A stretch of DNA of 64,000 nt from Hydrolagus colliei (taxonomy: Eukaryota). A program made the position numbers and the translations under genes. Positions 1 to 60,211 of this stretch are shown here, piece after piece (the stretch's first letter is position 1; each line of letters begins with the position of its first letter). The notes beneath the pieces were generated by a model, which was not told where the DNA came from, made no database searches, and was given only the letters and a program-made list of their open reading frames with translations. Where the stretch lies: positions 154,690,001-154,754,000 of the forward strand of contig CM068742.1 in assembly GCA_035084275.1 (NCBI GenBank). Reading direction: 5' to 3'.

Positions 1-411
1 GAATGGCTGGACAATGGAGACCCTGATATAGTGACCGGCAGGTTAGGGTCACCAGTCATCATGTACTGCAAGTTCACTCACCCTCACCCCAGATACACAG
101 GTAACATCACCATCAGGTGGAAGGGAGGCTGGGCTGGTCCTGTGTATTTTAAATATACAAACTATAGGCCAGATTCACAGGGAAAGTATCAAAATATCAT
201 TGATGCAAACGAGGGAGACGACACCGAGTGATTGCGAACCCGAGGAGGAACGACGCTACAATACAGATAAACCAGCTGAGGGGAGAGGACAATAATAAGA
301 CTTTCTCCTGTTCAACTGTTCAACTTTTCAAAAGTTCAACTGTCGTGTGGAGCTCCAGGGTGAGGGCAGACAGCTTGAAACTGACCCCAGCTACACATCT
401 GTATGTTACAG
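1..411 (+). pseudogene. V1-type Ig V-set pseudo-exon of truncated unit psi0 (5' end outside window)
   Basis: Same sequence family as the intact V1 exons. It has a 1-nt deletion in ACC-CCT (C4->C3), a 1-nt deletion in GATCGA, and a 32-nt insertion at 311-342. Donor ACAG|GTGAGG at 411/412. Confidence 0.9.
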
Positions 412-703
412 GTGAGGAACGATGGGAAGTTGGAATGAGACGTGATGATCCTCACTGGTGCCGGAGTCAGTGGGAAGTGTCTCGCCCAGGACGGGCAATA
501 GGGAGCGAGTGTTCCCAGTGAAGGAAGGTGTGTAACAGGGGCTGGCAGGGACAGTGAGTGAGCGGCTGATGGGAGGGAGGGCTGTGCTGTACACTGACCT
601 GTCACTGTGGGAATGTCTATTTGCCAAGGCTCCTCACATGTGTGTAACATGTACTGTGTCACACTGACTGCGCTTCAGTATTCCAATCCTGTTCCTGTCT
701 CAG

Positions 704-1087
704 GTCATGAAGAGAAGCTCCCGTCAGTGACTGGTACCAAGGGAGGTGATGCCACACTGCCCTGCTCCTTCACCAGGCCCAACACACACCAGAATCCTGC
801 CACAGTCACAGTGATTTGGAGGAGAGGGAGGCCACAAGGGCAGCCAGTTACTAATGACACTCTTGACCTCACCTCCCGCTCCAACCCCAGGGAGTCAGAG
901 ACAGTGAATGAAGGAAATCACAATAACCTGGTCGGGAATGTGAGGGATGGAGACGCTTGCCTGAGGATCAGGGACTTGGAGTTAAACGACAACAACCGGT
1001 ATTTCTGTAACATACACGTCATGTTTATCTATAACAGACAACAACAGGACCAGATGACACAGGACTTATCACGGATACAGGTTTTTG
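704..1087 (+). CDS. V2-type Ig V-set exon of truncated unit psi0 (open, 128 codons)
   Basis: Acceptor tctcag|GT, donor TTG|gtaaga, phase 1-1. LPCSF...WRR...YFCNIH Ig core. Read-through into the intron gives a stop at 1117-1119, followed by AATAAA at 1128-1133. Confidence 0.75.
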
Positions 1088-1815
1088 GTAAGAAATCTCT
1101 TGTCACTGCGGGTCACTGAATTGGGTAAATAAACAAGTCAATGTTCACTTGGTTTTAACAACGTTAAGTTTGATTAATTCCATATTCTGCTTCTCATGTG
1201 TTAATTAGCACACAGAATATATTCGGAATGAGCAGAAACTTTAGTTGCTACAGGAGACAGTGTTTCTTCCCTCTCATCTCATGTTGACTGGCTAGTCAAA
1301 GCCTTAACAATTAGACTCACTTTTACCACCGCATTTCCTACCCTACTCTCTTCCTGATCCCAAATTCCAGCTTTGGTGGTGGTGGAAATCCTGATTTGGG
1401 AATTCCACCCCGTGTGAAAGCCACGCTACAAATGTGATTGTTTATTGTGGCTTAAAGTAGCAGGAAGCTTGCCATGGGGTGTGTACAAGATTACGGAATG
1501 ACAAGATTGGTCTGGGCGATGAAAGCCCATCTGATGTGAAAAGCGCTAAACAAATGTAACTCTGTTGTTGTTGTTCATCTCATCCTTGCAAAACACACAC
1601 CTACTGTCCACGCATCGCATCATCAAGTTGCTTTGTAAATGAATCAGTGTCCTGGCCTCAAATACCCTACCTGGCAACCTGATCCAGTTGTGCGAGTGTG
1701 CAACAATGGGGAGAGAATGACTGGGATCAGAGTGGAGAGCTCCAGTGGGGAGTGAGCACAGACATGATGCGGAAATATATTTGGTAACAATAACTCTGTT
1801 TCTTTATATCCAAAG

Positions 1816-1853
1816 CTCCGGCCGTCATCCTGACTCTGTCCCTTGTGGCTGGT
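1816..1853 (+). pseudogene. 38-bp stub of the C2/TM exon, fused to upstream-of-leader sequence
   Basis: Acceptor ccaaag|CTCCGGCCGTCATCCTGACTCTG matches 7789 onward. Homology stops at GTGGCTGGT, and an in-frame TAG follows after PQN. Confidence 0.85.
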
Positions 1854-2595
1854 CCACAGAATTAGGGGAGGATGGAAATAGAAGTGTGAACAGTTGAGTT
1901 AGTGTAAGCAGGCAAGAGAGGGCACATGGTGAAGAGATGATGCTGGGAGCTGTGCTCTGTCCCTAGTCCCGTCAGCCTCTGCGGGTTTTAGTGGTGGCCT
2001 AATAGAGGATAAGAATTGGGAAAATAGGAAAATAGGAATAGATTATTTCTGCTGATCAGCCAGTTAGTTACAAGAGGAACATATCTAAAACCACGACAAA
2101 AAAGGAACCAAGGGGAGGTTAGAATCCCTGTCTTTACACAGAAGGGGTGCAATTGTCGAATTCAGTTACAAACAATAATTAATGCAAAATCCGTCAACTC
2201 TATCAAGGGGTTTGAATAGATATTTGAAGAGGAGATACATTAAAAGGTGTGGTGGGAGGGGGAGTGGCCCAACTCCTAGCTCGCGTCAAATTCCGTAATT
2301 GTCCAGGGCCTTGGGACATCCTCCCAACATGAAAATGCTCTAGAATGTCATGTATTTGGGATATAAAGCTGAGGGCAATGTAAACGAGAATTAAACGTCA
2401 CTCAGTGAGTGTAAAATTGGGCGGGGGCAGAGTTAGTGTTGAAACATTGCAGAGGATCAGACAAGGGTCATGTGGGGGGGTGGAGCTCTGGTGGTGACAA
2501 GGGAAGTGAGAGGAGGAAGGAAAGAGAAGTGTGACCAGCTGTGTCAGTGCGAGGCAGGCGTGCGAGGGGAAGGAGTGTGTCCTGAGTGAGGGAAG

Positions 2596-2647
2596 ATGAT
2601 GCTGGGAGCTGTGCTCTGCGCCCTGGTCCTGTCAGCCTCTGCCTTAC
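2596..2647 (+). CDS. Gene A leader exon ([17 protein letters not shown], signal peptide)
   Basis: Hydrophobic 17-mer ending ASA-L. Phase-1 donor C|GTACGT fits the phase-1 V1 acceptor. Conserved upstream of every V1. Confidence 0.8.
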
Positions 2648-5600
2648 GTACGTACTTTCCAATCAGTAACTATAATAAGTGCTCACACACGATTGTCACC
2701 TCAATGCTCGATTCCGGCAACTCCCTCCTTGTCGGCCTCCCCAACTCTTCACTCCACAAGCTGCAGATAATCCCAAACTTTGCACCTCGTGTCCTCTCCC
2801 ACAACAGGCTCTGTGACCCTATCACTCCCACCCTCGCCCATATCCAGTGAGGAGATCTCAGAGGATTGAATTCCAGATTCACATACTCATGTACAAGACT
2901 CCCCACCCTCCTACCTCGCTGACCTGCTGATCCCCTCTCCAACTATCTGCTCTCTCCATTCAGCAAGCTCCGGCCTTCTCCATGTATCCCGTCTGACCCG
3001 CCCTTCCAACTTTGGTGGGCTTGCAGACCCTCTGCTCCTATGCTTTTTGGAACTCAATTGAATAATCCCTTCACCTTGCTCCCTAACTTGCCTTGTTTAT
3101 GGCTGGCCTCAAGCCCTTCCTTTTTGACTGTCCCTTCAGCTGCTATCCTGTCTCATGCCAACCCTGGCCACCCAACCCACCTCCCCCATACTTGAGTCCT
3201 GACCCATGACTGTTCAGCGCCTTGGGACGTCCTCCCAACATGAAAGGTGCTCTACACATGTGGTTGTTGTGGTTGTTTATCTTTTAGTGGCATGATTACA
3301 TGTGTAATGATTACAAGTGTGTGTTTGTTACCTCTGCCTCCGTTTGATTTCCCCAATCTCTCTCTGTCTTGTCTGTGTTACTTTTCGCTTGCCACTGGAG
3401 CTCTTTACTCTAAACTGATTCCCAAGTGTCAATACTAGTTAAACCGTATCAGTTACCCCCAAACCACATTCTGGGGTCCTCTTGCATTAGACACTTGGGT
3501 GACAACAAATGATGGTATTTTAATATTACACCCAGACCACAACAGCGTTTTTCTTTCCACAAGCCACCCATAGTAACCCCTCTGACCTGTCACTCCCCTT
3601 CCCCTTCACACTTAATATGCCTGCTCTTCAAACATCTATCCAATTCTCTTTGATAGACTTGACGGATGATGCATCAAATTCAGTTTGTGGCAGATAATTC
3701 CACAATTCCACCCATTCTGTGTAACGACAGGAAAACCAAAGTGTTTCCTTGTTAACTCTCTGCTTCTACTTTACCTAATTTAAGCCTTCATAATTCCTTT
3801 TTTGAGATGGTATTAGATGTGTTCTTCTTGAGACTATCTCTCTGGTCTATTTCCGGATCAGCTAAAATGTGTTGCTATTTCCCCTGTTGTGATCTGTTGC
3901 GACCTCTATCTGTTCGCCCCAAACCTTCTCTGTTCTTCAGCCACCAATCTCTCAAATCTCTCTTCAGATCTGAAACCCCTCATCTCTGGGAATGTGCCAA
4001 TAAACAAGCAATTTGTATTCCATTGCTGTTATTTCGTTCTTACAGAGAATCCCAAACTGTCTCAAAATTCCAAACCAAGCTCTTGTCCAAGCTCAGTGTT
4101 GCCTGTTTGATTTTATATTGTGTTCTGGTTCACATTACACCATGTGTGTCCTCACAGGGATCAGTGTGAATGGCTGGACAATGGAGACCCCTGATACAGT
4201 GACCGGCAGGTTAGGGTCACCAGTCATCGTGTACTGCAAGTTTGTTGAGCCGCACCCCAGATACACAGGCAACATCACCATCACGTGGAAGGGAGGCTGG
4301 ACTAGTCCTGTGTATTTTAAATATACAAACTATAGGCCAGATTCACAGGAAAAGTATCAAAATATCATTGATGTAAACGAGGGAGATCGATACCGAGTGA
4401 TTGGGAACCCGAGGAGGAACGACGCTACAATACAGATAAACCAGCTGAGGGGAGAGGACAATAAGAAGTGGTGCAACTGTCGTGTTCAGCTCCAGGGTGA
4501 GGATGGAATGTGTGAAACTGGCCCCGAAACACATCTGTATGTTACAGGTGAGGAACGATGGGAAGTGGGAATGAGACGTGATGATCCTCACTGGTGCTGG
4601 AGACATATTGTGAGGGTATAGATGTGTGGAACTCCCACTGGTTTAGATATTCTTAACAATGGTGACAGATTTCTCCATGTATAAGGCAAATGTCTGCCCA
4701 AATACAAGAGATTTTCTCCTTGGGTCATCACCAAAAATCCTTTATGTTTATCAGTCAATCATTTCATAACCATTGAGATCTTTGATCTGAGTAAACTGAC
4801 TGCAAAAGTGTCACTATATTTATAGTAACAAATAAAAATAATGATTGTAGTTCATATTACATCTGATTACATTTTCTTGATATAAAAGGAAGTGCTGACT
4901 AACCTCTATAGGACTTTGGTGAGGCCTCAGCTGGAATACTGTGTTCAATTCTGGTCACCACACTACAGAAAGGATGTGAAGGCATTGGAAAGGGTACAAC
5001 GAAGATTTACTAGGATGGTGCCAGGATTGAGGGACTTCAGCTATGAGGAGAGGCTAGATAGGCTAGGGTTATTCTCTCTGGAGCAGAGAAGATTGAGGGG
5101 AGACCTAATAGACATTTATAATATCATGAGGGGTTTCGACAGGGCAAATAGAGAAAAACTATTTCCACTCGTGGGTGAATCTGTGACTCGTGGTCACAGA
5201 TTTAAAATAGTTTCAAGGCGCAGTAGAGGGGAGCTGAGGAGAAATGTTTTCACTCAGCGAGTTGTTCGAATCTGGAATGCATTGCCTGAAAAGCTGGTGG
5301 AGGCTGATTCGATAACAACTTTTAAAAGGGAATTAGATCTTTATTTAGGGAGAACGGGTCTATTAGGCTATGGGGAACGGGCAGGGCAGTGGGATTGAAT
5401 CGCTCTTTTCAAAGAGCCGGCACAGACTAGATGGGCCGAATGGCCTCCTTTTGTGCCGTAAAATTCTATGATTCTATGATTCTTACAGATCAATAGATTA
5501 CTCTATGAAGTGAATTGACTGTATATTTTGTTGGCAAAATATGGTAGCCAATTGCACACAGCAGTTTCCCATAGATACTCGTGGATTGAGTAACCAAAGC

Positions 5601-8600
5601 TTTGTTTAAGGGATTATTACCAAGCAAAGAAATACGCCAATCGAAGAACACAATTGTTTCCTATGTACCCTTAGGTAAACAGACATGTGTGGACAAAGGA
5701 AAATTACCCAAGGTTTTTCCCTACCCATGAATCAAGCTCAGGTCCTCTATAGTATGAGGCAAGTGTTCTAAGTTACAAGGCTAATCAGTAAGAAGGTTGT
5801 TGGTGCTATTAAAAGCCAAAGTTTAATTAGTGAGACATTGCTGCCCACAATCTCAGAGAGGGTGAGTGAGGAGCACAGGCCTGAGGGAGATAGTGCCATG
5901 AAAAGCAGGAATATACAGGATGTGTAACATGTACTGTGTCTCACTGACTGCTCTGCACTATTCCAATCCTGTTCCTGTCTCAGGTCATGAAGAGAAGCTC
6001 CCGTCAGTGACTGGTACCAAGGGAGGTGATGCCACACTGCCCTGCTCCTTCATCAGGCCCAACACACACCTGAATCCTGCCACAGTCACAGTGATTTGGA
6101 GGAGAGGGAGGCCACACGGGCAGCCAGTTACTAATGACACTCTTGGCCTCACCGCCCGCTCCAACCCCAGGGAGTCAGAGACAGTGAATGAAGGAAATCG
6201 CCATAACCTGGTTGGGAATGTGAGGGTTGGAGACACTTCCCTGAGGATCAAGGATCTGGAGTTAAACGATACCGACCAGTATTTCTGTAACGTACACATC
6301 ATGTTTATCAATAGCGGAGAACAACAAGTTCATGTGACACAGGACACATCACGGCTGCTGGTTGTTGGTAAGAAATCTCTTGTCTCTGTGGGACATGGAA
6401 AGGGGTAAATGTCAATGTTCACGGGCGCATCATTACAGACTAGGTTTGTCTCATTCCTTACCCTGTGCCTCACGTGTTAATTAGCACAAGAAACATGTTA
6501 TGAAACAGCAGAACCTTTTCCCTGGGGGGAGGGATTCTTCTCACTTGCCTCCCGTTAACGCTGCAGCCAAAGTTAGGGTGATCCTAGCTGGACAAGCAGC
6601 CGGTATCTTGCCAATGACATGTGACGTAGTTGTCACAAGATCACAGGATTGGTCTGAATGAAGAAACCCCATCTAGTCATATACATACTGAACCCCCAAA
6701 TCACCCGCTAATCCCTACCAACCCCTCGCCCCCCAAAACATTGGTATCAAGCGGAATCTAAAAGTCTGTAATTGCTCTGCCTGAAGGGAAATTGGATAGA
6801 TACGTGAAAATGAAACATTTTCAGGGCTCTTTTGTAAGACTGGGATAGAATGACTAGTTGAGAGATCCTGTAGCTTGGAGCACTTGCCGTGGAACCCAGA
6901 GGACCTGGGTTAGATTATTGCGCTGGGGAAACCATTGGGCAAACTGCCTTACTCCAAACACGCGTTTACCCAGTAATGAGTGCGAATCCAGCTGTCAGTT
7001 GATTGGCAGGCAATTTTCTGGGGTAATAATCGCTTAAAGAAATATATTTAGAAAAAAAATGTGATCGATCAGTGCTGTGATTAAAAATTAGCTGCTGGGT
7101 TTTGCTCACAAAAATATACAGGTACAGTCAATTATCTTGACAGTATATTCTAATAATCTCTCCCCCAAAAAATACAATAGTAAAATTGGTCATTTCAATC
7201 CACAACTCTTCGTGGGACGCTGCTGTGCGCAATTGCCTGCCACGCTTTGCCCATAAGTATACAGTCAATTCACTTGATAGTACATTCTGTGAAGCACCTT
7301 GAGACATCTAGAAGACGTGAAAAGCACCTTATCAAAATGCAAGGATTATTTTTAATTATTATTTTGTGAAGCGGTTTTAGTCGTTGAGAAGATGTGAAAA
7401 CTTCTATATTAAATGCAATTATTATTATCATTACTAGTGATGATAGAAGTAGCAGTAAATACAAGGATGATTATATATTACAGCTCTTTCAAAGAACCGG
7501 TTACAGAGACGATGTTGCAAATGGCCTTCTTCCTGCTATAAGATTCTATGATATTAAAATGGAAATATTAAATATTTGGAGATGAACATTATAAACAAAA
7601 CAAAAATGGACAAGAAAAAAGCAGGCAATCAGATTAGAGCAGAAAACAACAACAACAAAATTACATTTGTATAGTGTCTTTCATGATGGCGGGCCATCTG
7701 AAGAACACCAGTGAGTAAGCGAGTACTAGTGGATATGACGGTGAAAGTAATTTAATTGGAATAACTCTGTGTTTCTTTATACCCAAAGCTCCGGCCGTCA
7801 TCCTGACTCTGTCCCTCGTGGCCAGTGATGGAGCCGGAGGTGGCATCGTGTGCACGGCTGAGGGGGAACCACCAGCCACCATCACATGGATCGACCCCCA
7901 GAATAACACGCTGCCCGTCAACACCCACACGTCAATCACACATATACCAGACATGTATCTAACCTTGGGGGAAATCTGGGACCTGAAGTTGAGGGGAACG
8001 TACCGCTGTGTAGCTGAGAACACACAGGGCAACGACACCCGAGACATCCTCGTCACTGCCCTACAGAGTGAGGTGGACAACGAGAGTGATGGGGACAACG
8101 AGAGTAATGGGGACAGTAATTTGTATGTCAGGGTCTCCATTGTGGTCATGCTTGTTCTGCTGATTGCCTTCATTGTCCATTGGGTAAAGAGAGGTAGGTG
8201 TTTACAGATGTAGTGATTATGTGGATTTGTGGATTCCTGTAGCTCAGTGGTCACTGAGTATTCGACTTACAAACATGAGACCTGCGTTCAATTCCAGGCA
8301 GGGTGAAACATTTGCCAAGTTTCCTTATTCCACACGCCTGATAATAATTATGACTGATTGTAGGATTTTGCTATGTGCAAGTGGCTGCCTCATTTAGCCC
8401 ACAAATATACAGCACAGGCAATTCACTTTACAGTATCTTCTGTGAAGCACTTTGAGACTTCTAGAAGATGTGAAAAGCGCTATCTCAAATGCAAGGATTA
8501 TTATTATTATTCCAAATGAGTCTAGCAGAGCCAATCGCTTCCTCAACTCTGACTCAGCAAATATTCTGCCATATACACACACTTGGCAACCACATCATCA

Positions 8601-9984
8601 TCATCATCATCGTAATAATAAACCTTGTATTTGGTATAGCGCTGTTCACATCCTATCGACCTCTCAAAGCGCTTCACTGAATATACTGTAAAGTGAATTG
8701 ACTGTATATTTGTGAGCAAATCACAGCAGCCAATTGCGCACAGCAGTGTCCCCACAAACAGTCGTGGATTGAAACGACCCATTTTATTATCGTGTTTTTT
8801 TCAGACGGATTATTATTAGGTTTGGAGTAAGAAAACTTGCTAGATTTCGCCCTGACCTGCCTAGATTCGAACACAGGTCTCTCCAACGTGGTCTCCCCAG
8901 CTTGCAAGACAAGTGCTGTAACCACTGAGCCACAGGAGCTCCACCTGGTTAATACTAAGCAGAAGGAGACAAAGAAAAATTCTTGCATTTGGTATTGCCA
9001 GCCGGTGGTATATCTGGCTTCCTGTTTAGTAACCATAGTTACATAACACAATAGGAAGAGAACAGTTTGCCACAAGCCTTTCACTGGAATAACGTACACA
9101 CTTATCAAACCAGCAAAACATCTAAAGCAATAACAAATGAAATAATGATTATTATGATGATTATTATCTCTCCCCTTGCTTTCGTCTCTTCAGGTGTCAG
9201 AGTTTTCCGCCAGCGTTCAGAGAGGTGAGTGTGTCTTTCTAATGCCTTTACCTTTCCATTGACATTCAAGTTGCAAAGGGCTATTGAGCACCATGTTTGG
9301 CAAGCTTCCTGCTTCTCTCTCCAGCTACGACCACCCTACCCATTGGGGCTTTGGCTTGCAGGATTAATAGGATGAGTATGAGGATTCCCTGACACCAGTG
9401 GCTGGTCTTCCCTTCCAATTCTTGCCAATGAGTAGACTGGCTTTGCTGCCACCAGCAGTGCCCCAGAATATTAGATACTCACCTGGCTCAGGAACAAGAC
9501 TGAAGACCCACAGATTGTTGGCTTGAATCTGACAATCTGTTTCCAATCATGTCACCTTGGAGCCAGAGAAGCCAAGGAAACACCGTGTAGCTTAATCTAG
9601 ACAAACACCATGCACACAATCCTGTGGCCAAGCTGAGGCTTGGACTCTTCAGACAAGAGGCTTTTGCCCTATGTTCTATGCCAACAATCCCTCAGTAAAC
9701 CCATGATAGTTTGTGGGGAAGTTGTTGTATGAGCATTGGCTGATGTCATTCACATAAAATACAAAGTCATTACACTTTACAGTAAATCCTGTGAAGTGCT
9801 ATAAGACGTCCTCCTGATGTGAAAGACATGGTATCAAATGTGAGGATTATTAACGATGAGGTTTATCTTCCATCCTCTATAAAATGTAAAATATAAAATA
9901 TAAAATGTTTTCTCTTTATTTTTTAGTCGTCAAATGGATTTGGTTGTTGACAATGACTTTGTTCAACCTCAGCTGCCTACATGA
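2596..9984 (+). CDS. SIGLEC15-like: Gene A: Siglec-15-like receptor, V1-V2-C2-TM(Arg)-short Tyr-free tail, about 439 aa, putative activating type
   Basis: Exons 2596-2647, 4158-4547, 5984-6367, 7789-8193, 9194-9224 and 9927-9984(TGA), all GT-AG and phase-compatible (1320 nt). The motifs PHPRY, GNPRRND, CRVQ and CTAEGEPP resemble Siglec-15 as recalled from memory (BLAST needed). Confidence 0.8.
2680..3276 (+). mobile_element. L2-clade LINE 3' fragment in the leader intron (paralogs ~17330-17935, ~22275-22870, ~39410-39990, ~58350-58970)
   Basis: Degenerate ORF2 C-terminus ([32 protein letters not shown]) and a 3' tail cgccttgggacgtcc...aaaggtgctctacacatgtggttgttg. Boundaries approximate. Confidence 0.7.
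4158..4547 (+). CDS. Gene A V1 exon (Siglec-type V-set domain, Arg retained)
   Basis: cacag|GG acceptor, ACAG|gtgagg donor, 390 nt open, CNCRVQ. Confidence 0.9.
4885..5483 (+). mobile_element. CR1 LINE 3' end (~600 bp), specific to gene A
   Basis: ORF 4892-5398 is the CR1 ORF2 C-terminus ([13 protein letters not shown]). (ATTCTATG)n tail. The empty site cttgatatacagatc is seen in gene B. Confidence 0.95.
5984..6367 (+). CDS. Gene A V2 exon (second V-set domain, no Arg after the F-strand Cys)
   Basis: 384 nt open, phase 1-1, YFCNVH. Confidence 0.9.
7789..8193 (+). CDS. Gene A C2-set + acidic stalk + transmembrane exon
   Basis: ccaaag|CT acceptor, AGAG|gtaggt donor. [10 protein letters not shown]...GTYRCVAEN...[25 protein letters not shown]. 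Confidence 0.9.
8234..8511 (+). mobile_element. tRNA-derived SINE (paralogs ~26669-26982, ~46703-47014)
   Basis: A box TAGCTCAGTGG, B box GTTCAATTCC, 3' tail aaatgcaagg(att)n. Confidence 0.8.
8594..8942 (-). mobile_element. tRNA-derived SINE (paralog ~27064-27415; absent from gene C)
   Basis: The reverse complement has GGAGCTCCTGTGGCTCAGTGG...GTGTTCGAATC and the same 3' tail family. Confidence 0.75.
9194..9224 (+). CDS. Gene A cytoplasmic exon 1 (31 nt)
   Basis: tcttcag|GTG...AGAG|gtgagt, phase 1-2, conserved in three copies. Confidence 0.8.
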
Positions 9985-9988
9985 GACG
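9927..9988 (+). CDS. Gene A cytoplasmic exon 2 with in-frame TGA at 9982-9984
   Basis: tttttag|TCG...GACG|gtaact, phase 2-1. The equivalent codon is GGA in gene C. Confidence 0.8.
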
Positions 9989-10104
9989 GTAACTGTTTTC
10001 CCTCGATTACCGATGGCACAATTTTCACCCCGTGCTTTCACTAACCCAGGGCTGTGTCTCAGCTTTGCTCAGTCAGTGACACTCTCACCTCTGGCTCTGG
10101 GTGT

Positions 10105-10565
10105 CTGACCTTCAAATCCCTCCACTCATCTGCACCCCGCTACCTGTCTAAACTCCTCTCTCCTCAAACCAGTTCCCGTTGGGACATTTCAGCGTTTCAG
10201 CGCCTTGGGACGTCCTCCCGACGTAAAAGGCGCTCTATAAATGTAAAATGTTGTTGTTGTTGTTGTTGTTGCCTTCGCTCCACTGGGTCTGGCCTCCTTC
10301 ATGTCCTGTGAATCCTACGCTCCACCCTCGGCGGCCGTGCCTTCAGCCACTATGCCCCAATGCTCTGGAATTCCCTTCCTCACTCCCTTCATCTCGACCC
10401 CTCTTTTCTCAGTTTCAGGTCCCAGCTGAAGACCTTTCTCTTCGACCGTGCCTTTGGTCACCTTTCTCCTGCCCCTGGCTCGGTTCCGCGGTCCACTATT
10501 GTGAATTGCTCTGAGACGCCGTCCGTCGTGGAGGGCCCAATATAAATCAAAGCTGTTGTTGTTGT
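10105..10565 (+). mobile_element. L2-type 3' fragments occupying the site of the region deleted in genes A/B (paralog ~28559-28930)
   Basis: L2-like 3' sequence (gctgaagacctttctcttcgaccgtgcc) with (TGT)n tails. Boundaries approximate. Confidence 0.6.
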
Positions 10566-11366
10566 TGTACTATATATACTGTACAATTTTGTTTTTTGTT
10601 GTTGGGAGGGCGTCCTTGACGTGTAGTGTTAGAAAAGAGAAAGGAGTTTCTCTGGGTGTCCAGATTAAATTGTTTATTTACTTCATGGCTCTTTGTGGGT
10701 CCGTGTTGATTGTCGCATTCGACAACAATAACAGCAACAACAACAAAATTATATATGTGTGGCGCCTTTAATGTCAGGAGGACATCCCATGGTGCTGGAC
10801 AGTTACTGCTTCAGACCTGAGCAGAGCACAGGTCTGGGCGGGGGGGGAAGGAGTTGTCGGTGGGTCTATCGAAGAGGAGATTCTTGAATCGAGACTTGAA
10901 AGAGTACAGTCGGGGGGCGAGGCCGAGGAGCTTCAGGATGGAGTTCCAGAGGTTGGGGTCAGAGTGATTGAAGGCTCAACAAATCCAGTCGCAACATAAC
11001 ACAGTGAATCCTGTCAAATGCTATCAGATGTACTACGATATGTTTTGACAATGTGATAGCACCACTTTGCTGTGTCCCTCAAATGTGAAATACATAATAA
11101 ATTAGTGTTGCTGTTGTTATTAAATCAAATGGAATAATATCCAGCCCCTCGGGCCTCGCATGTGGTTCCAATTCCCAGTTCACTGTTCATTCCTTGAACC
11201 CTTTGTCCCAGCTTTGGGGACTGGGCTTCAGACATTAAAGCCATATCTCTGGACTTCCACATACACAGTACATACACACTCCATTTGATAACTAGTGTCA
11301 TATTTCCTTTGTGAAGCCAATTTTCAATTGCTAATTATTTACCAACATTGTCTGTCTTTCCTTCAG

Positions 11367-11405
11367 ACGTGCACGGAAATTCTACCATCAGAACCGTCGA
11401 TGACA
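11367..11405 (+). pseudogene. Gene A tail exon 5, downstream of the stop (YGN->HGN)
   Basis: cttcag|AC...GACA|gtgagt, paralog of 53318-53356. Confidence 0.7.
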
Positions 11406-12011: not shown

Positions 12012-12064
12012 ATGTGATTTATGCTGTTGTCTCCAAATCGAAGAGGAGCTCAGCTGAGCAGTGA
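12012..12064 (+). pseudogene. Gene A terminal exon with untranslated ITIM relic (VIYAVV)
   Basis: ttctag|ATGTGATTTATGCTGTTGTC...TGA, paralog of 53955-54007. Confidence 0.75.
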
Positions 12065-51300: not shown

Positions 51301-54007
51301 CTAGGCTTTATAAGTAGGGGTATAGAATTCAAAGGCAGGAAGTGCTGACTAACCTCTATAAGACTTTGGTGAGGCCTCAGCTGGAATACTGTGTTCAATT
51401 CTGGTCACCACACTACAGAAAGGATGTGAAGACATTGGAAAGGGTACAAAGAAGATTTACTAGGATGGTGCCAAGATTGAGGGACTTCAGCTATGAGGAG
51501 AGGCTAGATAGGCTTAGGTTATTCTCTCTGGAACAGAGAAGATTGAGGGGAGACCTAATAGAGGTTTATAAGATCATGAGGGGTTTCGACAGGGCAAATA
51601 GAGAAAAACTATTCCCACTCGTGGTCGAATCTGTGACTCGTGGTCACAGATTTAAATTAGTTTCAAGGCGAAGTAGAGGGGAGCTGAGGAGAATTTTTTT
51701 CACTCAGCGAGTTGTTCAAATCTGAAACGCATTGCCTGAAATGGTGGTGGAGGCTGATTCGATAACAACTTTTAAAAGGGAATTAGATCTTTATTTAGGG
51801 AGAACAGGTCTATTAGGCTGTGGGGAGCGGGCGGGGCAGTGGGATTCAATCGCTCTTTTCAAAGAGCCGGCACAGACTAGATGGGCCAAATGGCCTCCTT
51901 TTGTGCCGTAAAATTCTATGAATCTATGAATCTATGAATTTGGCATAAATGTTCTGCTGGTATAAACAGGGCTGTAATGAGAGGGGAGCATTAGGGTCTG
52001 TCATGGGATGGCTGAGAGGGACTTTATAGAGGCTGCTGCTGCCCAGGGATATGGTGGAATGTGGCAAAGGGGAAGCTGAAGAGGGATGGAGAAGGTGCTG
52101 ACTGTTGTGTCTCTGACAGATGAAGCTGCTGTGATCTACAGCGAGGTTACCCCAGCACTGGCCAGGCAAACAGCTACAGGTAAGAAACGTATCACACAGG
52201 GACAGATCTGGCATTGTCTCACCTCTCAACCGACCTTCTCTCTCCTGACTGGGGTTAATTATCAGGCTGGCTCAGTTGGAAATACTCAGATAGCTGGTTG
52301 TGGTTTCAACATCCAAATTTGGTCGTTTACATGTAATCTACATGAGAAACTCCACATTATCGGAGGCGTCGTCCATCAGGCCCTGTTCAGGTGGATGTTA
52401 AATGTATCCTGTGGTAGAACAACAACAAGAAAATTACATTTGTAATTTCACATTGGACATCCTCCTGATGTGAAAGCCACTATACTATTACTACTAATAT
52501 ATATTATACTATTTTGTTGTTTTTGTTGTTTGGAGGGCGTCCCAAGGTATGTACTGTTAGAAAAGAGAAGGGAGTTTCTCTGGGTGTCTAGTTTAAATTG
52601 TTTATTTACTTAATGGCTAGTTGTGGGTCCAAATTGACTGTCGCATTCAACAACATAATTACATGTGTATGGCGCCTTTCACGTCAGGAGGATATCCCAA
52701 GGTGCCGGACAGTTACTGCTTCAGACCCGAGCTGAGGACGGTGAGAAGGAGGGGGGAAGGAGTTATCGATGGGTCCATCGAAGAGGAGTCTTGAGGCGAG
52801 ACTTGAAGGAGTCTAGTGAGGGAGCGAGGCAGAGGGATTTTGGGATGGAGCTCCAAAGGTTGGGGTCGAAGTGACTGAAGGCTCAACAAATACACAGTCG
52901 CAACTAATACAGTGAATCCTGGAACATGTCAGAAGTACTTTGATGTATTTTGACAATGTGATAGCACACACCGCTTTGCTGAGTCCTCCAAATGTGAAAT
53001 GGATAATAAATTATTGTTGCTGTTGTTGTTAAATCAAATGCCAGGAATAATATCCAATTGAGCATTGACCTCAGATTCATGGGGGTTGCTCACCAGCCCC
53101 CAGGGCCTGGCTTGTGTTTCCAATTCCCAGTTCACTGTTCATTCCTTGAACCTTTGTCCCAGCTTTCGGGACTGGGCTTCAGACATTAAAGCCTTATCTC
53201 TGGACTTCCACATACACAATAAATACAAACTCCATTTGATAACTAGTGTCATATTTCATTTGTGAAGCCAATTTCCAATTGCTAATTATTTACCAACATT
53301 GTCTGTCTCTCCTTCAGAAGTGTACGGAAATTCTACCATCAGAACCGTTGATGACAGTGAGTGTTGTCTACCTTTTCTGGTTTATTGTTTATCCAGTGTC
53401 TTCTCCGCTCGCACTCTGGCTTTGGGTCAGGAGGAGGGGTATTGGAGCCTCTACGTTGGGGAATTTGAGGTCACACAGTCCAGGCTGATGCTCCAGTGCA
53501 GCAATGGGGAGAGCGCTGCATTGTCAGAAGTGCTGTCCTTTGATTGTGATGTTAAAGTGAGATCAAGCCCGTGTCTGTTTTTTTGGTCAGCCACGTGCAG
53601 AAACACATCTGCTGTGGCAAGAGAATCCAAACCTGACTGGGAGTTCCACAAATATATCTCACCCTTTCAGATAGAAATTTCACCGCATCTGGAATGCAAT
53701 GTGCTGTTGAGAAGGAAATTTCTCTCTCCTTGTGTCCTGGCCATCATTGGTTCAAATAAAATTGGTCGCTCACTTCATGGCTATTTGTGAGACATTTTAA
53801 ATGCAAACTGGGCGCCAGGTTTGCTGATAAAATATGGTTTTAAGACATTATATTAAATATGAGGGTTCTAATGACTTTACCCAGGACACACAGTGTATCA
53901 CAGCTCTCAGCAAGTGGAGGTACATGTCCTGATTCCATTTTGTTTCTCTTCTAGATGTGATTTATGCTGTCGTCACCAAATCGAAGAGGAGCTCAGCTGA
54001 GCAGTGA
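39322..54007 (+). CDS. SIGLEC15-like: Gene C: Siglec-15-like inhibitory receptor with a multi-ITIM tail; V1 exon frameshifted (529 aa if repaired, 399 aa if V1 is skipped)
   Basis: Exons 39322-39373, 41629-42017, 43531-43914, 46205-46663, 47345-47375, 48581-48642, 49101-49160, 52120-52179, 53318-53356 and 53955-54007. All are phase-compatible except for the 1-nt deletion in V1. Confidence 0.72.
40848..41470 (+). mobile_element. Degenerate CR1 3' fragment upstream of gene C V1
   Basis: CR1 ORF2 C-terminal and 3' UTR homology with stops. Absent from other units. Confidence 0.85.
41629..42017 (+). pseudogene. Gene C V1 exon with a 1-nt deletion (389 nt)
   Basis: GAG ACC CTG ATA CAG TGA instead of GAG ACC CCT GAT ACA GTG. 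The rest of the exon is open, with FSCRVE. Confidence 0.8.
43531..43914 (+). CDS. Gene C V2 exon
   Basis: 384 nt open, YFCHVH. Confidence 0.9.
43952..44160. repeat. Nested fold-back (GGTATTG/CAATACC) inverted-repeat tract at a CR1 5' junction
   Basis: Built from both orientations of the adjacent CR1 5' sequence GGATCGGTATTGGGACCACTGCAC. Confidence 0.85.
44160..45152 (+). mobile_element. 5'-truncated CR1 LINE in the gene C V2-C2 intron
   Basis: [15 protein letters not shown]..[11 protein letters not shown] remnants and a CR1 tail. Confidence 0.9.
46205..46663 (+). CDS. Gene C C2/stalk/TM exon
   Basis: 459 nt open, [25 protein letters not shown]. Confidence 0.9.
46489..46578 (+). repeat. Coding 18-bp tandem repeat (GDRESD x5) in the stalk
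   Basis: GGGGACAGGGAGAGCGAT x4 plus one variant unit. Gene A has 2 units (8073-8108) and gene B has 3 (26491-26544). Confidence 0.95.
48105..48416 (+). mobile_element. tRNA-derived SINE specific to gene C
   Basis: TAGCTCAGTGGTTAGAGC head and aaatgcaagg(att)n tail. Confidence 0.75.
49101..49160 (+). CDS. Gene C tail exon 3 (AIYSVV, ITIM-like)
   Basis: tctgacag|ATG...TTAG|gtaaga, 60 nt, phase 1-1. Confidence 0.75.
   Translation: MQLLQSTAWSLHHQLGNQV
49674..51938 (+). mobile_element. 5'-truncated CR1 LINE between tail exons 3 and 4
   Basis: RT ORF broken by a stop at 50671-50673 and a frameshift near 51340. CR1 tail present. Confidence 0.95.
52120..52179 (+). CDS. Gene C tail exon 4 (VIYSEV, canonical ITIM)
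   Basis: tctgacag|ATG...ACAG|gtaaga, 60 nt, phase 1-1. Confidence 0.8.
53318..53356 (+). CDS. Gene C tail exon 5 (EVYGN, YxN motif)
   Basis: cttcag|AAG...GACA|gtgagt, 39 nt. Confidence 0.75.
53955..54007 (+). CDS. Gene C terminal coding exon (VIYAVV ITIM, stop)
   Basis: ttctag|AT GTG ATT TAT GCT GTC GTC ... CAG TGA. Confidence 0.8.
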
Positions 54008-55665
54008 ACTCTGGCCCCTCCCAGAGTCTGCTGTGCACAGTTTATATAGGTGTGTCCTGCAGTGACTTATATTGGGCCTGGATCAGCAGCCAATACAATA
54101 ACATTGTACAATCAGTCCCTGAGAGAGCACGGCTCATTACAGTCCCAGTGTGTTTGTAGTGTGGCTGTGGCTTGTGGCCTTGCTGTGTGTAAACACATGT
54201 TATTGCTGCCTGTGACCTGCAATTTACAATTGTGTTTATCTCCACTTCAGGGAAATCAAACATGAGGGGGTCTGTCTTGAAAGGAAGAGTCTATTGTCTG
54301 TCAGGAGGGAAACACTGCTATTTGGTGGACATTCCAGCATTGAATACTAAATTTTTGCACAGATACCTTAGATCTACCTTCAAATAAAAATATTTTTTGC
54401 TGTTAATATAGCGCCTTATCATATCTTTGAAACATCTCAAAGCGGACACAACACAGCATGCAATTGCTCGCATCATTGTCCCACAAACAGAAGTAGATTG
54501 AGTGACCAAATTATTATTCATTATCAAATTTTTGTAAGGGATAATTATCCTTAGAAGAACAATCTATCAATTGACCAACAATTGAGTTCTACTTATTGCT
54601 AGGTAACCTGAGGCGTGTGGAGTAAGGAAACATGCCGACGTATTGCCATTCCCGGGAATCAAACCAGGTTCCTGCAGGACTACACATGCTTAGAGATTAC
54701 CCGCAAAGTGTTAGACTAGTTTCTATATAAATGCAAATTATTGTGATTAACTCCCAGTGCTGCACAGTGTGTGCTGCCTTTACACTCTGGGCCACTGGGG
54801 GCACTGCAGGATCGTCATCAGTTCACAAACCAGTGGACAATCTGTCTCAATGTTTTCTAACTTGAGGAACGCAAGAATTAAAGAAGGTTCTTGAGACCGG
54901 CCTTGAAGGAGGCAATGTGGGACGGAGTACCAGAGTGTGACAGCAGAGAGACTGAAAGCCTGGCCACCGATGGTTAGAAACATTCAGACAGAGGCATGGA
55001 GAAGACTGGAGCCTAATGAATGGAGGGAGCCAGCTCCCAACCTTGCCTCCTCATCTACTCTCCTGTAGACGTTGAATTATCCTACCATCCCTTCTTACTC
55101 TCCCTGCCCTCTACCCCTCCTGATTCCAAGTCTCAGCTCAGAGTCAAATCCCTCACTGTCCAATGCTTTAGGACATCCTACCGACATGAAAGGCACTATA
55201 CAGATATAATTGGTTGTTGATATAATAATAATTCTTGCATTTGGTTTAGTACCTATCATGTGAGATGTCTCAAAGCGTTTCACAAATATTCACTGGAAAG
55301 TGAATTGACTTTACAGTGTATTCTGTGAAGTGCTTTGACACATTTGTAAAAGCACTATAGCAAATGCAAGGAATATTCTTATTATATAAATGGATTAATC
55401 GCAGCTACCGTAATGACCCCAAAACATTTGGGAAATGAGTGATCGTATCCCTGTTGTTTTCTTGTTCTTGAGGGATTGTTGTCCATGTAGACGTGTCAGG
55501 CTAATATCAGGCCACAAAGAGGTGTTACTGCTAATATGAGCCCTGTTTTCTTCTGGTTGTTTGGAGGTGTTAATATTCATATCAGTCTACATAGATATCA
55601 CATGATGTAGCAGTTTCACTGTTAATATCAGAGGTTATAGCAGAGGAGCAGAGGTTAATATCAGA

Positions 55666-56000
55666 GGAGCTCCTGTGGCTTGGTGGTTAGAACACTTGTC
55701 GACCAAGCTGGGGAGACCTGTGTTCGAATCCAGGCAGGTCAGGATGAAACCTTGAGCAAGTTTCCTTGCTCCCCCCCCCCCCCGCACACACACACCTAAT
55801 AATAATCCATCCAAAAAAAACACTATAATAAAATTGCTCATTTCAATCCACGGCTGTTTTTGGGGACGCTGCTGTGCGCATGGCTGCCGCGATTCGCCCA
55901 CAAATATACAGTTAATACACTTTACAGCAGATTCTGTGAAGTGCTTTGGGATGTCGATAAAATGTGAAAAGCACAATATCAAATGCAAGGATTATTATTA
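55666..56000 (+). mobile_element. tRNA-derived SINE with a 9-bp target-site duplication
   Basis: TTATAGCAG at 55635-55643 and 56001-56009. B box GTTCGAATCC. The empty site is near 13705. Confidence 0.85.
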
Positions 56001-56436
56001 TTATAGCAGTTTTATTGTTACAGGCAGGGGAGAGAACTCCAATGAAAGTTGACAGAATTAATCTGGAAAGTATCGCCCCATTAACCTGACCTCAATAATT
56101 TTACTTCTTAATTGTTCTATCATTATCACTTCCTTTCTTTAGATATAATATAATTGACAGCCAGCACAGGTTCAGAAAAGGTACATATTGTTTGACCAAA
56201 CTCATTTTGAGTACTTTGTTTGAGGAGGTGACAGCTCAAATTAATTTGGGGAAGCTATGTGTTCTAGCAAAGCTAGATCCAGAAGACTTTCAACAAAGTG
56301 CCACAAGAAACCCAACTTCACAAATGGTAGTCACTGGATATTAAGAGAAAGACTAGGAACTGGATTCAGAATTGGCTGAAGGGAAGGAAGCAGAGGCCTT
56401 TGTTAGGGGAGCAATGTCATAATATATATTGTATGC

Positions 56437-57237
56437 GAGGGTCCGTCGATATGGAAATGTTCCGATTTAGATATATCGATGGGCTCATATCGAGATATAC
56501 CGATATATGGATATTTTCGGGGGTTTCGTACTGCTTATGCATGCGCGCATTCAGAGGTGTGCGCGCATTCGGGGCCTATCTCCTCAGGAGGTAAATATCT
56601 CTCTCTCTCTCACACTCACTCTCTCCATCTCTGTGTTTTTCTGTCTGTGTCTCTGTCCTTTCTCACATCCCCCCCCCCGCATCTATCTCTCTATCACATC
56701 CCCCCCGTCTCCCCCCCACCCACCAGTCTCTTTCTCTTCCCTTCCCCCCCCCCCCCCCCCACATCCCTGGTCTCTCTCTCTACTTCACCCCCACCCCGTC
56801 TCTCTCTCTACCTCCACCCGCCCCTCCTCCCCCCCCCCCCCCTCCGGTCTCTCTCTCCCTCCCCAGTCTCTCTCTCCCTCCCCATTCTCTCTTTCTCTCT
56901 CCCCCCCCACCCCTGTCTCCCTCTCTCTACCCCACCCCCCGGTCTCTCTCTCTCCCTCCCCCCCCCACCCCGGTCTCTCTCCGCTGAATCCCCCATCTCT
57001 CTCCCCTCACCCCTTGCATACCTGTATATTGTATTCTAGAACTATGAATACAATACGGCGGTTTTCACCTCGGTCTGTGCATTATGTATAGAGATGAGCA
57101 TTCTGGGTCTTGTAGTTCAGTGTGCGCGCATTCCGGTTTTCCGATATATCAACTTTTTCGGTATATCGGTATTTTTGGAATACGTATATCGGCATATCGA
57201 TATGAAAATTATATCCGATATAACTGATATATCGATA
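56437..57237. mobile_element. Possible non-autonomous DNA transposon (hAT-like) with an internal C/T-rich tract
   Basis: CpG-rich ends with many ATATCG/CGATAT repeats. Absent from the paralogous site (~38097-38280). No matching right TIR. Confidence 0.35.
56600..57015. repeat. Polypyrimidine / poly-C low-complexity tract
   Basis: (CT)n and C-runs up to about 20 nt. Confidence 0.95.
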
Positions 57238-58262
57238 AATGGCTTTTCTGGGAATAATAATTGGTTTTTGAAAAATGAAAAATGAATTGACCAATTCAAT
57301 CAATGATTGTTTGTGGAATACTTCTGTGCTGAATTGTCTGCTGTGTTGCCACAAAACATAGTCAAGTCACTTTACAGTTTATTCTGTGAAGATCTTTGAG
57401 ATGACAAATGCACACGATTATTAATGATGACCTGGAGTTGCAGACCCAGTGTAATATCGTCAAGATAATGGGACGGTGGAAGGGTTAGTGTTGGGAAGAA
57501 CAGTACAGAGGCTCAGAACAAAGCAGACGTGGGGGGTGGTGCTCAGACAGTGACCACAGAATGAGGGGAGGATAGAAATAGAAGGGTGAACAGTTGTGTC
57601 AGGGTGAAACAGGAAGCGATGAAAGGATAATGCTGGGAGCTCTGTACCCTGGTCCCGTCAGCCTCTGACACATTTAAGGAGTGATCTAATAGAGGATAAG
57701 AAATAGCAATAAATTCATGGCTGATCAGCCCAGTTAGTTACAAGAGAAATAAATCTAAAAACATGCCAAAAAAGAAACTAAGTGGGGGGGTTACAAACCC
57801 TGTCTTTACAGAGAAGTGGTGCAATAATGAAAATGTTTACAGATCACAATTAATGGCACAAGCCGTCATTCTATAAAAGGGAATTGAATAGATGTTTGAA
57901 GTGGAGGCATATTCTAGGATGTGGTGGGAGGGGAAGTGACCGGACTCTCAGCTCGGGTCCAAATGCATAGGGCCCTGGGACATCCTCCCAACATGAAAGT
58001 GCTGTAGAATGTCATGTATTTGGGATGTAAAGCTGTGGGCAATGTAAACGAGTATTAAACTTCACCCAGTGAGTGTAACATGGGGCGGGGGCAGAGTTAG
58101 TGTTGAAACATTGCAGAGGATCAGACAAGGGTGATGTGGGTGGGGTGTGGAGCTCTGGTGGTGACAAGGGAAATGAGGGGAGGAAGGAAAGAGAAGTGTG
58201 ACCAGCTGTGTCAGTGCGAGGCAGGCGTGCGAGGGGAAGGAGTGTGTCCTGAGTGAGGGAAG

Positions 58263-60211
58263 ATGATGCTGGGAGCTGTGCTCTGTGCCCTGGTCCTGTC
58301 AGCCTCTGCCTTACGTACGTACTTTCCAATCAGTAACTATAATAACTGCTCACACGCGATTGTCACCTCAATGCTCGACTCCGACAACTCCCTCCTTGAC
58401 GGCCTCCACAACTCTTCCCTCCACAAGCTGCAGATAATCCCAAACTTTGCAGCTCGTGTCCTCTCCCACACTAGACTGCGCGATCCTATCACTCCCACCC
58501 TCGCCCGGCTCCACTGGCTCCCCGTCCCTCAGAGGAACAAATTCATACTCACATTCAAGTCCCTCCACCCTTCTACCTCTCTGACCTGCAGATCCCCTAT
58601 TAACCTACTTGTTCCTTCCATTCAGCAAGCTCCAGCCGTCTGCATGTCTCGCATTCGATCTATCCGACACATCTTTGGCGGGCTTTCAGGCTCTCTGCTC
58701 CAATTCTTTAGAACTCTATCACACTATCAATCCCAACTCTATCAATCCTTTTGCCTTGCTTCCTCCCTTGCGTCCTTCAACGCTAGCTTGAAGACCCTCC
58801 TTTTTGAGAGTCACTTCAGCCGCCTTCCTACCACTCTGCCCTCCCTCATCACATACCTTCCCCCCCCACCACATCCCCTATGCTTGGGTCCTGGCACCTG
58901 ACTGTTCAGTGCCTTGGGATGTCCAAGCGACATGAAAGGCCCTCTACGAATATAGTTGTTGTGGTTCTTTACCTTTTAGTGGAATGATTACAGAGTCAAG
59001 TGACATCCGGATATAAGATTCTTGTCTTTAACGTTGACAAGAATGAGTGAGTTACTCACTGAGCCTCACAGGGCAAGTGTGTATTTGTTAACTCTGCCTC
59101 CGTTTGATTTCTACAATCTCTCTGTCTTGTCTGTGCTGCTTTTCGCTCCCCACTGGAGCTCTTTACTCTAATCTGATACTCAAGGGTTAGTACAAGCTAA
59201 ACTAACAGTTAGCCCCAACATTCCTAGTGTACATAATACTTTTCCATCAGACACCTGGGTGACAACAAATTATGGTATTTTTATAGTACACCCAGACCAC
59301 AACAGCGTTTTTCTTTCCACTTGACAGACGTCCAGTTTGTGGCAGAAAATTCCACAATTCTACCCATTCTGTGTGAAGACAGGAAAACCAAAGTGTTTGC
59401 TTGTCAACTCTCTGCCTCTACTTGATCTGTTTTAATCTCCTCATAGTTCCTGTTTTTTGTGATGGTATTAGATGTGTTCCTCTTGTGACTGTCTGGCTGT
59501 TCTATTGCCAGATCAGCTAAAATTTGTTGTCATTTCCCCTGTTGTGACTCATTGTGATCTCTATCTGGTCGCCCAGAACCTTCTCCGTTCTTGAGCCACC
59601 AATCTCCCAGATATCTCTTTGGATCTGAAACCCCTAACCTCTGGGAAAATGCCGATAAACTAGCATTTTTTTTCCCATCGGTTTTATATCGTTCTTACAG
59701 AGATCCCCAAATTGTCCACATTACTCACAGCTGTGAACAAACCAAGCTCTTGTCCAAGCTCAGTGTTGCCTGTTTGCTTTTATATTGTGTTCTGGTTCAC
59801 ATTACACCATGTGTGTCCTCACAGGGATCAGAAAGAATGGCTGGACAATGGAGACCCCTGATACAGTGACTGGCAGGTTAGGGTCACCAGTCATCATGTA
59901 CTGCAAGTTCACTCACCCTCACCCCAGATACACAGGCAACATCACCATCATGTGGAAGGGAGGCTGGTCTTGTCCTGTGTATTTTAAATATACAAACTAT
60001 AGGCCGGATTCACAGGGAAAGTATCAAAATGTCATTGATGTAAATGAGGGAGATCGATACCAAGTGATTGGGAACCCAAGGAGGAACGACGCTACAATAC
60101 AGATAAATCAGCTGAGGAGAGAGGACAATAAGAAGTTCAACTGTCGTGTGGAGCTCCAGGGTGAGGACGGAAAGGTTGAAACTCGCCCCAGAACTCGTCT
60201 GTATGTTACAG
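58263..60211 (+). CDS. SIGLEC15-like: Gene D, 5' part: leader (58263-58314) and intact V1 exon (59825-60211)
   Basis: Leader identical to A/B/C. V1 is 387 nt open with KFNCRVE. Downstream exons are not in the window. Confidence 0.75.

Follow-up and report, generated by a model that had tools for sequence, protein, structure and literature searches.

Siglec-15 is a conserved, stand-alone Siglec with two immunoglobulin (Ig) domains, one V and one C2, and a lysine, Lys274, that binds the adaptor DAP12 (PMC6941304, PMC6288428). In the human protein R143 is the residue engaged in the salt bridge to sialic acid (PMC10264397). The paired Siglecs of primates, Siglec-5/14 and Siglec-11/16, in turn lie in tandem and combine ectodomains that resemble one another with signalling modules of opposite effect (PMC6288428). 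Here we describe a tandem array of Siglec-15-like genes from the chimaera Hydrolagus colliei, in a window of 64 kb (assembly GCA_035084275.1, contig CM068742.1, positions 154,690,001 to 154,754,000, forward strand) that has a GC content of 45%, an observed/expected CpG ratio of 0.375, i.e. a vertebrate composition, and no N. We consider it probable that this array belongs to the family's lineage with immunoreceptor tyrosine-based inhibitory motifs (ITIMs), and that two of its genes, A and B, are short-tailed derivatives with a basic transmembrane (TM) residue and candidate activating receptors. The identity and the sequence history contained in this reading appear near-certain from the comparisons below, while the activating function of A and B is predicted from two sequence hallmarks only, by analogy with paired receptors (PMC6288428) and from the position of the charge in the outer leaflet.

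Paired receptors and the route from an inhibitory to an activating receptor are themselves already well known. Short-tailed activating receptors of the KIR, Ly49 and LILR type derive from an inhibitory ancestor through a premature stop that removes the ITIMs, and they carry a basic TM residue. Genes A and B appear to have taken the same route; however, those receptors belong to unrelated Ig families and have the basic residue mid-membrane, whereas in A and B it lies near the outer TM edge. The primate paired Siglecs, in which concerted evolution proceeds by gene conversion and null alleles of individual members are frequent, resemble the array in both these respects as well as in their tandem arrangement, similar ectodomains and opposite signalling modules (PMC6288428). 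They differ from it in belonging to the CD33-related lineage and in activating partners that use a DAP12-type TM residue; moreover, the array in the window is known from its genes alone. In the literature covered we found no description of a Siglec-15 expansion, of two-V forms or of ITIM-bearing paralogues in cartilaginous fish, an absence that is no proof, as many subscription papers lay outside this scope; the related genes of Callorhinchus milii stand as "uncharacterized" in public annotation. The sequence pattern is clear and apparently undescribed.

The two-V Siglec-15-like family

Self-BLAST and exon models place all copies on the + strand, which bears out the original prediction of one gene family in tandem: two fragments (psi0 and psi1), two full genes (A and B), gene C and the start of gene D, or at least four genes and two fragments within 60 kb of the window. 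The open reading frames (ORFs) in six frames comprise two kinds of V-like exon and one exon with C2 and TM, all on this strand, in which Pfam identifies V-set and Ig/I-set domains. A full gene has the order leader, distal V (Va), proximal V (Vb), C2 with stalk and TM, and small tail exons. Alignments and splice-site searches give a Va exon of 390 nt and a Vb exon of 384 nt, both of phase 1-1, and a single exon encodes the C2 domain, an acidic stalk of SDGD(R/K/N)E repeats and the TM helix. The leader exons, located by tblastn with the C. milii leader, end in C directly before gt and share one phase in all five copies. The tail exons, found with the C. milii tails and then refined, are a 31-nt micro-exon (T0), T1, two 60-nt ITIM exons (T2 and T3, in gene C only) and a last exon (T4). 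Every modelled exon is flanked by AG/GT sites with consistent phases; the boundaries of T0 and T1 are those of exons in the NCBI model of C. milii LOC103188796, and this homology is the sole external check on splicing.

The 18-nt repeat encoding SDGD(R/K/N)E occurs in about 2 copies in A (8066-8115), 3 in B (26484-26551) and 5-6 in C (46482-46585), so that the receptors would differ in stalk length and negative charge. Genes A and B each have, some 660 bp upstream of the true leader, a second and degenerate leader exon (1937-1985 and 21291-21340), in which MMLGAVLC is followed by a stop or frameshift. The leaders of psi1 and D are preceded at this same distance by weaker leader-like matches (16584 and 57640). 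An internal duplication of the 5' region hence came before the expansion of the array.

Human Siglec-15 (7zoz) is the best PDB match for Vb-C2 (5e-21), for Va (1.2e-18) and for Vb (4.9e-12). The next matches, CD33 for Va (4e-7) and TIM-3 for Vb (1e-6), trail it by 11 and 5 orders of magnitude, respectively, and PILR and NKp30 are far lower. In the V-domain tree the Va domains of cartilaginous fish form one clade (99/95) and the Vb domains another (99/99), so that the two-V form predates the split of chimaeras and sharks. All chondrichthyan relatives retrieved have two V domains and a C2 domain, those of sharks and rays being mostly annotated as Siglec-15, and the nearest proteins are C. milii LOC103174418 (74% identity) and LOC103188801 (68%). 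The PDB comparison agrees with the original view of the family as Siglec-15-like and sets it apart from CD300, NKp30 and NITR, while the best protein and DNA matches, both to C. milii, fit its placement of the DNA in a cartilaginous fish and narrow this to a holocephalan.

Of known sequences, tetrapod Siglec-15 matches the two V domains and the C2 domain of the window genes best (7zoz; PMC6941304, PMC10264397), and their Va keeps FTHPH..Y, GNPRRND, the Cys-Arg pair and a Trp aligned with W44. In A, B, C and D it reads C-R-V, aligned with human CRVE (C142-R143); the Vb domains have Asn or His at the essential-Arg position. The window genes differ in having two V domains, against one in human, in lacking the mid-membrane TM Lys (K274) for DAP12, in an ancestral tail that bears ITIMs, and in being multi-copy, whereas the tetrapod gene is single-copy. 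Neither Va nor Vb in the window has a Cys pair matching the C95-C104 disulfide of the C'-C'' loop, although frog Siglec-15 has it. A tblastn search of the window with three Lys-type TM queries gave chance matches only.

The essential-Arg position varies among the relatives (P0003-P0013). In the distal V it is Leu or Trp in the shark and ray Siglec-15 proteins of the Lys-TM type and in C. milii Siglec-15, and in the proximal V of all these proteins it is His, except for Cys in Mobula and Arg in Rhincodon. The distal-V Arg survives in the window genes, in C. milii LOC103174418, in a Pristis XP protein (434 aa) and in a Rhinoraja protein, and is replaced by Cys in C. milii LOC103188801. The Pristis pectinata protein P0012 (434 aa) has the TM type of the window genes, but the final motif is IHNVVV, where His has taken the position of the ITIM Tyr; this may be another independent loss of inhibitory signalling.

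Genes A and B and their ancestry

The modelled features of genes A and B are the following.

2596-2647, + strand: gene A leader exon (tblastn with the C. milii leader; alignment and phase)
4158-4547, + strand: gene A Va exon, 390 nt; Cys-Arg (CRV) kept, aromatic residue before the Cys replaced (WCNC)
5984-6367, + strand: gene A Vb exon, 384 nt; Asn at the essential-Arg position
7789-8193, + strand: gene A exon for C2, acidic stalk repeat and TM; AGG (Arg) at 8130-8132
9194-9224, + strand: gene A T0 micro-exon, 31 nt, phase 1 to 2; its homologue is part of the C. milii NCBI model
9927-9988, + strand: gene A T1 exon; TGA at 9982-9984, 4 nt before the donor
12012-12064, + strand: gene A last exon T4, a relic still in frame downstream of the stop
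21950-22001, + strand: gene B leader exon
23743-24132, + strand: gene B Va exon; invariant C-strand Trp replaced by Ser (TCG, 23871-23873)
24967-25350, + strand: gene B Vb exon
26207-26629, + strand: gene B exon for C2, stalk and TM; AAG (Lys) at 26566-26568
27658-27688, + strand: gene B T0 exon
28381-28442, + strand: gene B T1 exon; TGA at 28436-28438
30370-30422, + strand: gene B relic T4 exon

At one and the same TM site gene A has AGG (Arg), gene B AAG (Lys) and gene C GGG (Gly). The residue is at position 4 of the best 19-residue hydrophobic window, LYV(R/K/G)V..., the TM segments of the window genes reading (L/V)YV(R/K/G)V(S/P)... Past the membrane the tails of A and B run for 32 residues without a Tyr and end in ...DND(F/L)VQPQLPT at a common TGA, where gene C and C. 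milii have GGA; the basic TM residue and the Tyr-free tail of about 30 residues originally ascribed to these genes are thus confirmed. Downstream of this stop both genes retain an intact, in-frame T4 relic that would read DVIYAVV(S/A)KSKRSSAEQ*, and blastn with the contexts of the T2 and T3 exons shows that A and B lack these two. The splice sites of both genes, 24 in all, are intact.

The outgroups give the direction of these changes. The residue at TM position 4 is Gly, Met or Val in C. milii and Gly in Pristis; C. milii also has GGA at the site of the A/B stop as well as T2- and T3-type ITIM exons, and its P0001 ends in a T4-type ITIM too. The basic residue, the stop and the loss of T2 and T3 are hence derived states that arose in the ancestor of A and B, and the comparison of copies shows that, as a matter of sequence history, all three predate the 19-kb duplication that separated the two genes. 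By the same comparison the window genes represent the ITIM lineage of the family, in which the TM is neutral and there are two or three (V/A)IYxxV motifs, a state kept by gene C and by C. milii LOC103188801 and LOC103188796. Descent of the activating-type A and B copies from an ITIM-bearing ancestor, as the original prediction had it, is well supported as sequence history by the relic ITIM exon, the GGA in gene C and C. milii, and the neutral TM in all outgroups.

In C. milii a 40-kb stretch holds, in this order, an annotated Siglec-15 (XP_007907096), a gene with Lys in the TM and a short tail, the ITIM-type LOC103188796 and a second Lys-type gene, LOC103174418. ITIM and Lys types thus alternate within one locus, and their ectodomains are 89.6% identical, so that in C. 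milii the family is one of paired receptors. The window aligns to this locus with 82-87% nucleotide identity, introns included. The two clusters have in common the leader, the Va-Vb-C2 order and the exon structure, and the C. milii ITIM members also share the acidic stalk repeat, the TM type and the T0-T4 tail exons of the window genes. However, the window proteins, which have no entries of their own in the database, are only 68-79% identical to those of C. milii, and hence the genes are different ones; neither Arg/Lys at TM position 4 nor the T1 stop occurs in any C. milii protein retrieved, and a database search limited to the TM and tail returned only the two C. milii ITIM proteins and no Arg/Lys variant. 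Furthermore, whereas ITIM-type genes alternate with Lys-in-TM genes in C. milii, the window is without a Lys-type TM exon. The notion of a paired cluster is accordingly right for the family, given the ITIM and Lys types of C. milii, while the window itself holds only the ITIM lineage and its derivatives. Within the C. milii locus (L001; 7345 and 21591-21602) tblastn matches shift frame within two exons, the Va of the first Lys-type gene and the Vb of LOC103188796, and the NCBI model of the latter gene appears to fuse the Vb end of one gene to the C2 exon of the next.

In sum, before the 19-kb duplication one ITIM-type copy gained, in place of Gly at TM position 4, a basic residue that today is Arg in A and Lys in B, and a GGA to TGA change produced a stop in T1 of the same copy. 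It also lost both internal ITIM exons, the last one staying as an untranslated relic, and patchy gene conversion keeps parts of the copies near-identical. An outer-leaflet TM charge is typical of FcRgamma-coupled receptors. The Arg/Lys of A and B, which resembles such partners in its position, would pair with an adaptor that has an acidic TM and an ITAM (immunoreceptor tyrosine-based activation motif), turning recognition by the same ectodomain into an activating signal, while the ITIM members would recruit SHP-type phosphatases.

Self-comparison reveals that a 19.35-kb unit (1-19353) recurs at 19354-38000 with about 95% identity, that a third copy at about 38000-56000 is roughly 80% identical, and that a fourth begins near 57200. 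The original prediction had considered that the tandem A/B copies might be an assembly artefact. This is excluded by a non-coding divergence of 3.9%, 32 indels and a 597-bp piece of a long interspersed nuclear element (LINE) present in copy 1 alone. Between the A and B units the non-coding DNA has 3.1 indels per kb, 21 of the 24 small ones not being multiples of three. The seven exons (1324 nt) differ by 95 substitutions (7.2%; 10.3% in Va), and their only indel is an 18-nt change in the stalk repeat. With 2.1 frameshifting indels per kb in non-coding DNA, about 2.7 would be expected in these exons, and none is seen (P about 0.07); nor did any of the 95 substitutions create a stop (simulated P = 0.038). 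The joint chance of both, if the mutations are independent, is about 0.003. This favours upkeep of the reading frames of both A and B, and the basic TM charge, too, was kept across their split (AGG vs AAG).

The ectodomains of A, B and C are 83-86% identical. Ratios of nonsynonymous to synonymous substitution rates (dN/dS) among the copies are 0.4-1.45 and as a test of function are not decisive; against gene C, Vb and the C2-TM exon have values of 0.54-0.75. The excess divergence of the exons was likewise rejected as proof of positive selection, since the synonymous rate (dS) is raised as well, non-coding divergence itself peaks at 8-9%, and mosaics from gene conversion explain it equally well. 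Indeed, the identity of A to C is a mosaic, with tracts of 98-100% in a background of 70-85%, suggesting recent gene conversion. These tracts (8126-8348, 12065-12300 and 12665-12758 in A against 46596-46820, about 54008-54250 and 54769-54862 in C) comprise the second half of the TM exon with about 155 bp of the next intron, and the 3' untranslated region past T4; in our assignment the TM codon and the T1 stop are outside the converted tracts.

Gene C, gene D, the truncated units and other features

39322-39373, + strand: gene C leader exon, phase as in the other copies
41629-42017, + strand: gene C Va exon, 389 nt; the C-run 41659-41661 has a 1-bp deletion, which gives a frameshift and a stop 13 codons in
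43531-43914, + strand: gene C Vb exon
46205-46663, + strand: gene C exon for C2, stalk (5-6 SDGDRE repeats) and neutral TM; GGG (Gly) at 46600-46602
47345-47375, + strand: gene C T0 exon
48581-48642, + strand: gene C T1 exon; GGA at 48636-48638
49101-49160, + strand: gene C T2 exon; ITIM-like AIYSVV, with Ala at position -2
52120-52179, + strand: gene C T3 exon; canonical ITIM VIYSEV
53955-54007, + strand: gene C last exon T4; canonical ITIM VIYAVV
58263-58314, + strand: gene D leader exon
59825-60211, + strand: gene D Va exon, 387 nt, intact; no further gene D exon before the window end

Gene C has the neutral TM (Gly, GGG) that was predicted for it. Its tail, however, contains three tyrosines and not four, in AIYSVV, VIYSEV and VIYAVV, the latter two of which fit the ITIM consensus (S/I/V/L)xYxx(I/V/L); a fourth was sought by blastn with the T2 and T3 exon contexts, which finds only two such exons. 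The proposal that it is the inhibitory member of the array thus finds support in its ITIMs and TM and conflicts with its Va exon, which is frameshifted as assembled: the C-run at 41659-41661 has 3 instead of 4 bases, and after the phase-1 leader the exon reads ...WTMETLIQ*. The canonical transcript would hence be null, with no full-length protein as assembled. No rescue was found on inspection of the sequence, as all five leaders share their phase and there is no alternative AG that would bring back the frame; the leader-like sequence some 660 bp upstream, examined for A and B, is itself broken. The same state of the C-run recurs in psi0 and psi1; in gene C the run of 3 could be an assembly error in a short homopolymer. 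Taken as assembled, gene C looks either like a recent pseudogene or like a gene expressed only as a V-C2 form that skips Va.

The two truncated units have these features.

1-411, + strand: psi0 Va pseudo-exon, truncated at the window start; alignable with the remaining Va exons, with its GT donor kept and at least 3 frame changes needed
704-1087, + strand: psi0 Vb exon, 384 nt, open, phase 1-1, AG/GT sites
1128-1133, + strand: AATAAA, 40 nt past the psi0 Vb donor
17242-17293, + strand: psi1 leader exon (MIL...)
19344-19763, + strand: psi1 Va pseudo-exon, with frameshifts and an insertion
20056-20439, + strand: psi1 Vb exon, open
20480-20485, + strand: AATAAA, 40 nt past the psi1 Vb donor

Neither psi0 nor psi1 has a C2/TM exon, and read-through of the Vb donor meets a stop and then AATAAA, which at this place is private to these two units and is found in none of A, B and C. 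To that extent they are as originally described. Their interpretation as a soluble output type does not hold, given that each Va exon needs at least 3 frame changes; with Va broken, only a secreted product that skips it would be open. The Vb exons of psi0 and psi1 diverge by 4.7%, close to the non-coding rate, with a dN/dS of 1.45. Their sequences mark both units, as assembled, as dead fragments.

LINE copies are scattered across the region, with endonuclease and reverse-transcriptase domains identified by Pfam.

4887-5483, + strand: LINE fragment of 597 bp in the Va-Vb intron of gene A only, 98.5% identical to 60809-61405, with none in copy B
35260-37860, - strand: LINE with endonuclease and reverse transcriptase, between genes B and C (self-comparison, ORFs, Pfam)
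49570-51926, + strand: LINE in the T2-T3 intron of gene C (self-comparison, ORFs)
60800-62684, - strand: LINE (RVT_1) directly 3' of the gene D Va exon (self-comparison, Pfam)

About 45 bp past the TM-exon donor, genes A, B and C each carry a tRNA-like head of a short interspersed nuclear element (SINE), TAGCTCAGTGG...GTTCAATTCC, at 8235-8300, 26670-26735 and 46705-46770; it is absent from the corresponding site of the C. milii gene, and an ARAGORN scan for this head called no tRNA genes. Short palindromic TGGTATTGATACCAAT-like units form a block of about 230 bp (43950-44185) that directly follows the gene C Vb exon and adjoins a LINE fragment. Between C and D, a long Ser/Leu/Pro-rich low-complexity stretch (56400-57090) is open in three frames of the + strand and looks like simple-repeat DNA rather than a gene.

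Competing explanations and significance

That A and B are activating derivatives has to be weighed against a simpler outcome of birth-and-death evolution, in which both would be dead or dying copies of an ITIM receptor, the TGA an ordinary inactivating mutation, the Arg/Lys incidental and the window mostly a field of pseudogenes, with the functional members of the family elsewhere. We give this a substantial but minor probability, and several observations lean towards it and weigh against the activating interpretation. The Va exons of psi0 and psi1 are broken and that of gene C is frameshifted, the internal ITIM exons of A and B are deleted, and LINEs have inserted throughout; together with the defects in half of the window units, the frameshifted exons of the C. 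milii array fit birth-and-death decay. The Va of B has lost to Ser a Trp that is present in every other Va compared, and the Va of A is heavily altered. Exon substitution rates equal or exceed the non-coding rate, the V exons have a dN/dS near 1, and the whole range of 0.4-1.45 fits relaxed constraint as well as diversifying selection. The case for maintenance of A and B is further weakened by the raised dS and the non-coding divergence peaks, and gene conversion from intact paralogues could hold the ORFs open even in the absence of selection. Public assemblies, searched for exact copies of the predicted A and B proteins and also of C. milii P0002, had nothing on record, and a basic residue near the membrane edge could merely snorkel and recruit no adaptor. 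Yet decay would have to have passed over seven exons that acquired neither a frameshift nor a new stop since A and B split, over every one of their splice sites and over the TM charge, retained as Arg in one copy and as Lys in the other; the dN/dS of Vb and the C2-TM exon against gene C also speaks against it. A stop close to the last exon junction escapes nonsense-mediated decay, and the TGA, 4 nt before that junction, would do so.

Maintained reading frames are equally what one would expect if A and B were expressed without adaptor signalling, as decoys or dominant-negative partners competing with the ITIM members for ligand. Such a role would suit a tail with neither Tyr nor any known motif and a basic residue at the very edge of the hydrophobic segment, but it is unlikely, as the charge is conserved between the two genes and, together with the truncated tail, forms the classical signature of adaptor-coupled partners (PMC6288428). 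Highly improbable, finally, is the full scheme in which an inhibitory C, activating A and B and secreted psi0 and psi1 all work. For A, B and C the features of tail and TM do hold, and the psi units offer a leader and an open Vb, followed by a read-through stop and an AATAAA of their own; however, their Va exons have at least three frame breaks, so that a secreted product needs exon skipping, their Vb exons evolve at the neutral rate with the high dN/dS given above, and gene C is stopped after 13 codons of Va. We hence retain the interpretation of A and B as candidate activating derivatives within an ITIM-lineage array.

A bolder scenario can be offered only tentatively. In it Siglec-15, otherwise single-copy and DAP12-coupled, would have become a true paired cluster in chimaeras, independently of the primate pairs. 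An activating form would have arisen twice, once as the ancestral Lys-in-TM type and once from an ITIM gene through a stop and an outer-leaflet Arg/Lys, with gene conversion keeping the ectodomains alike; the sialic-acid Arg would have survived in the expanded copies though lost from the shark and ray orthologues.

The practical weight of these findings is limited for as long as expression and adaptor coupling are read from sequence. If the preferred interpretation is true, cartilaginous fish depart from the accepted picture of Siglec-15 by a two-V form, by ITIM-bearing paralogues and, in this chimaera, by short-tailed derivatives with a basic TM residue. The inhibitory-to-activating conversion of KIR, LILR and Siglec-5/14 would then have arisen in the Siglec-15 lineage of cartilaginous fish as well. 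Likewise, with near-identical ectodomains mounted on three signalling chassis, the family would be a useful natural system for asking what ligand pressure drives paired receptors.

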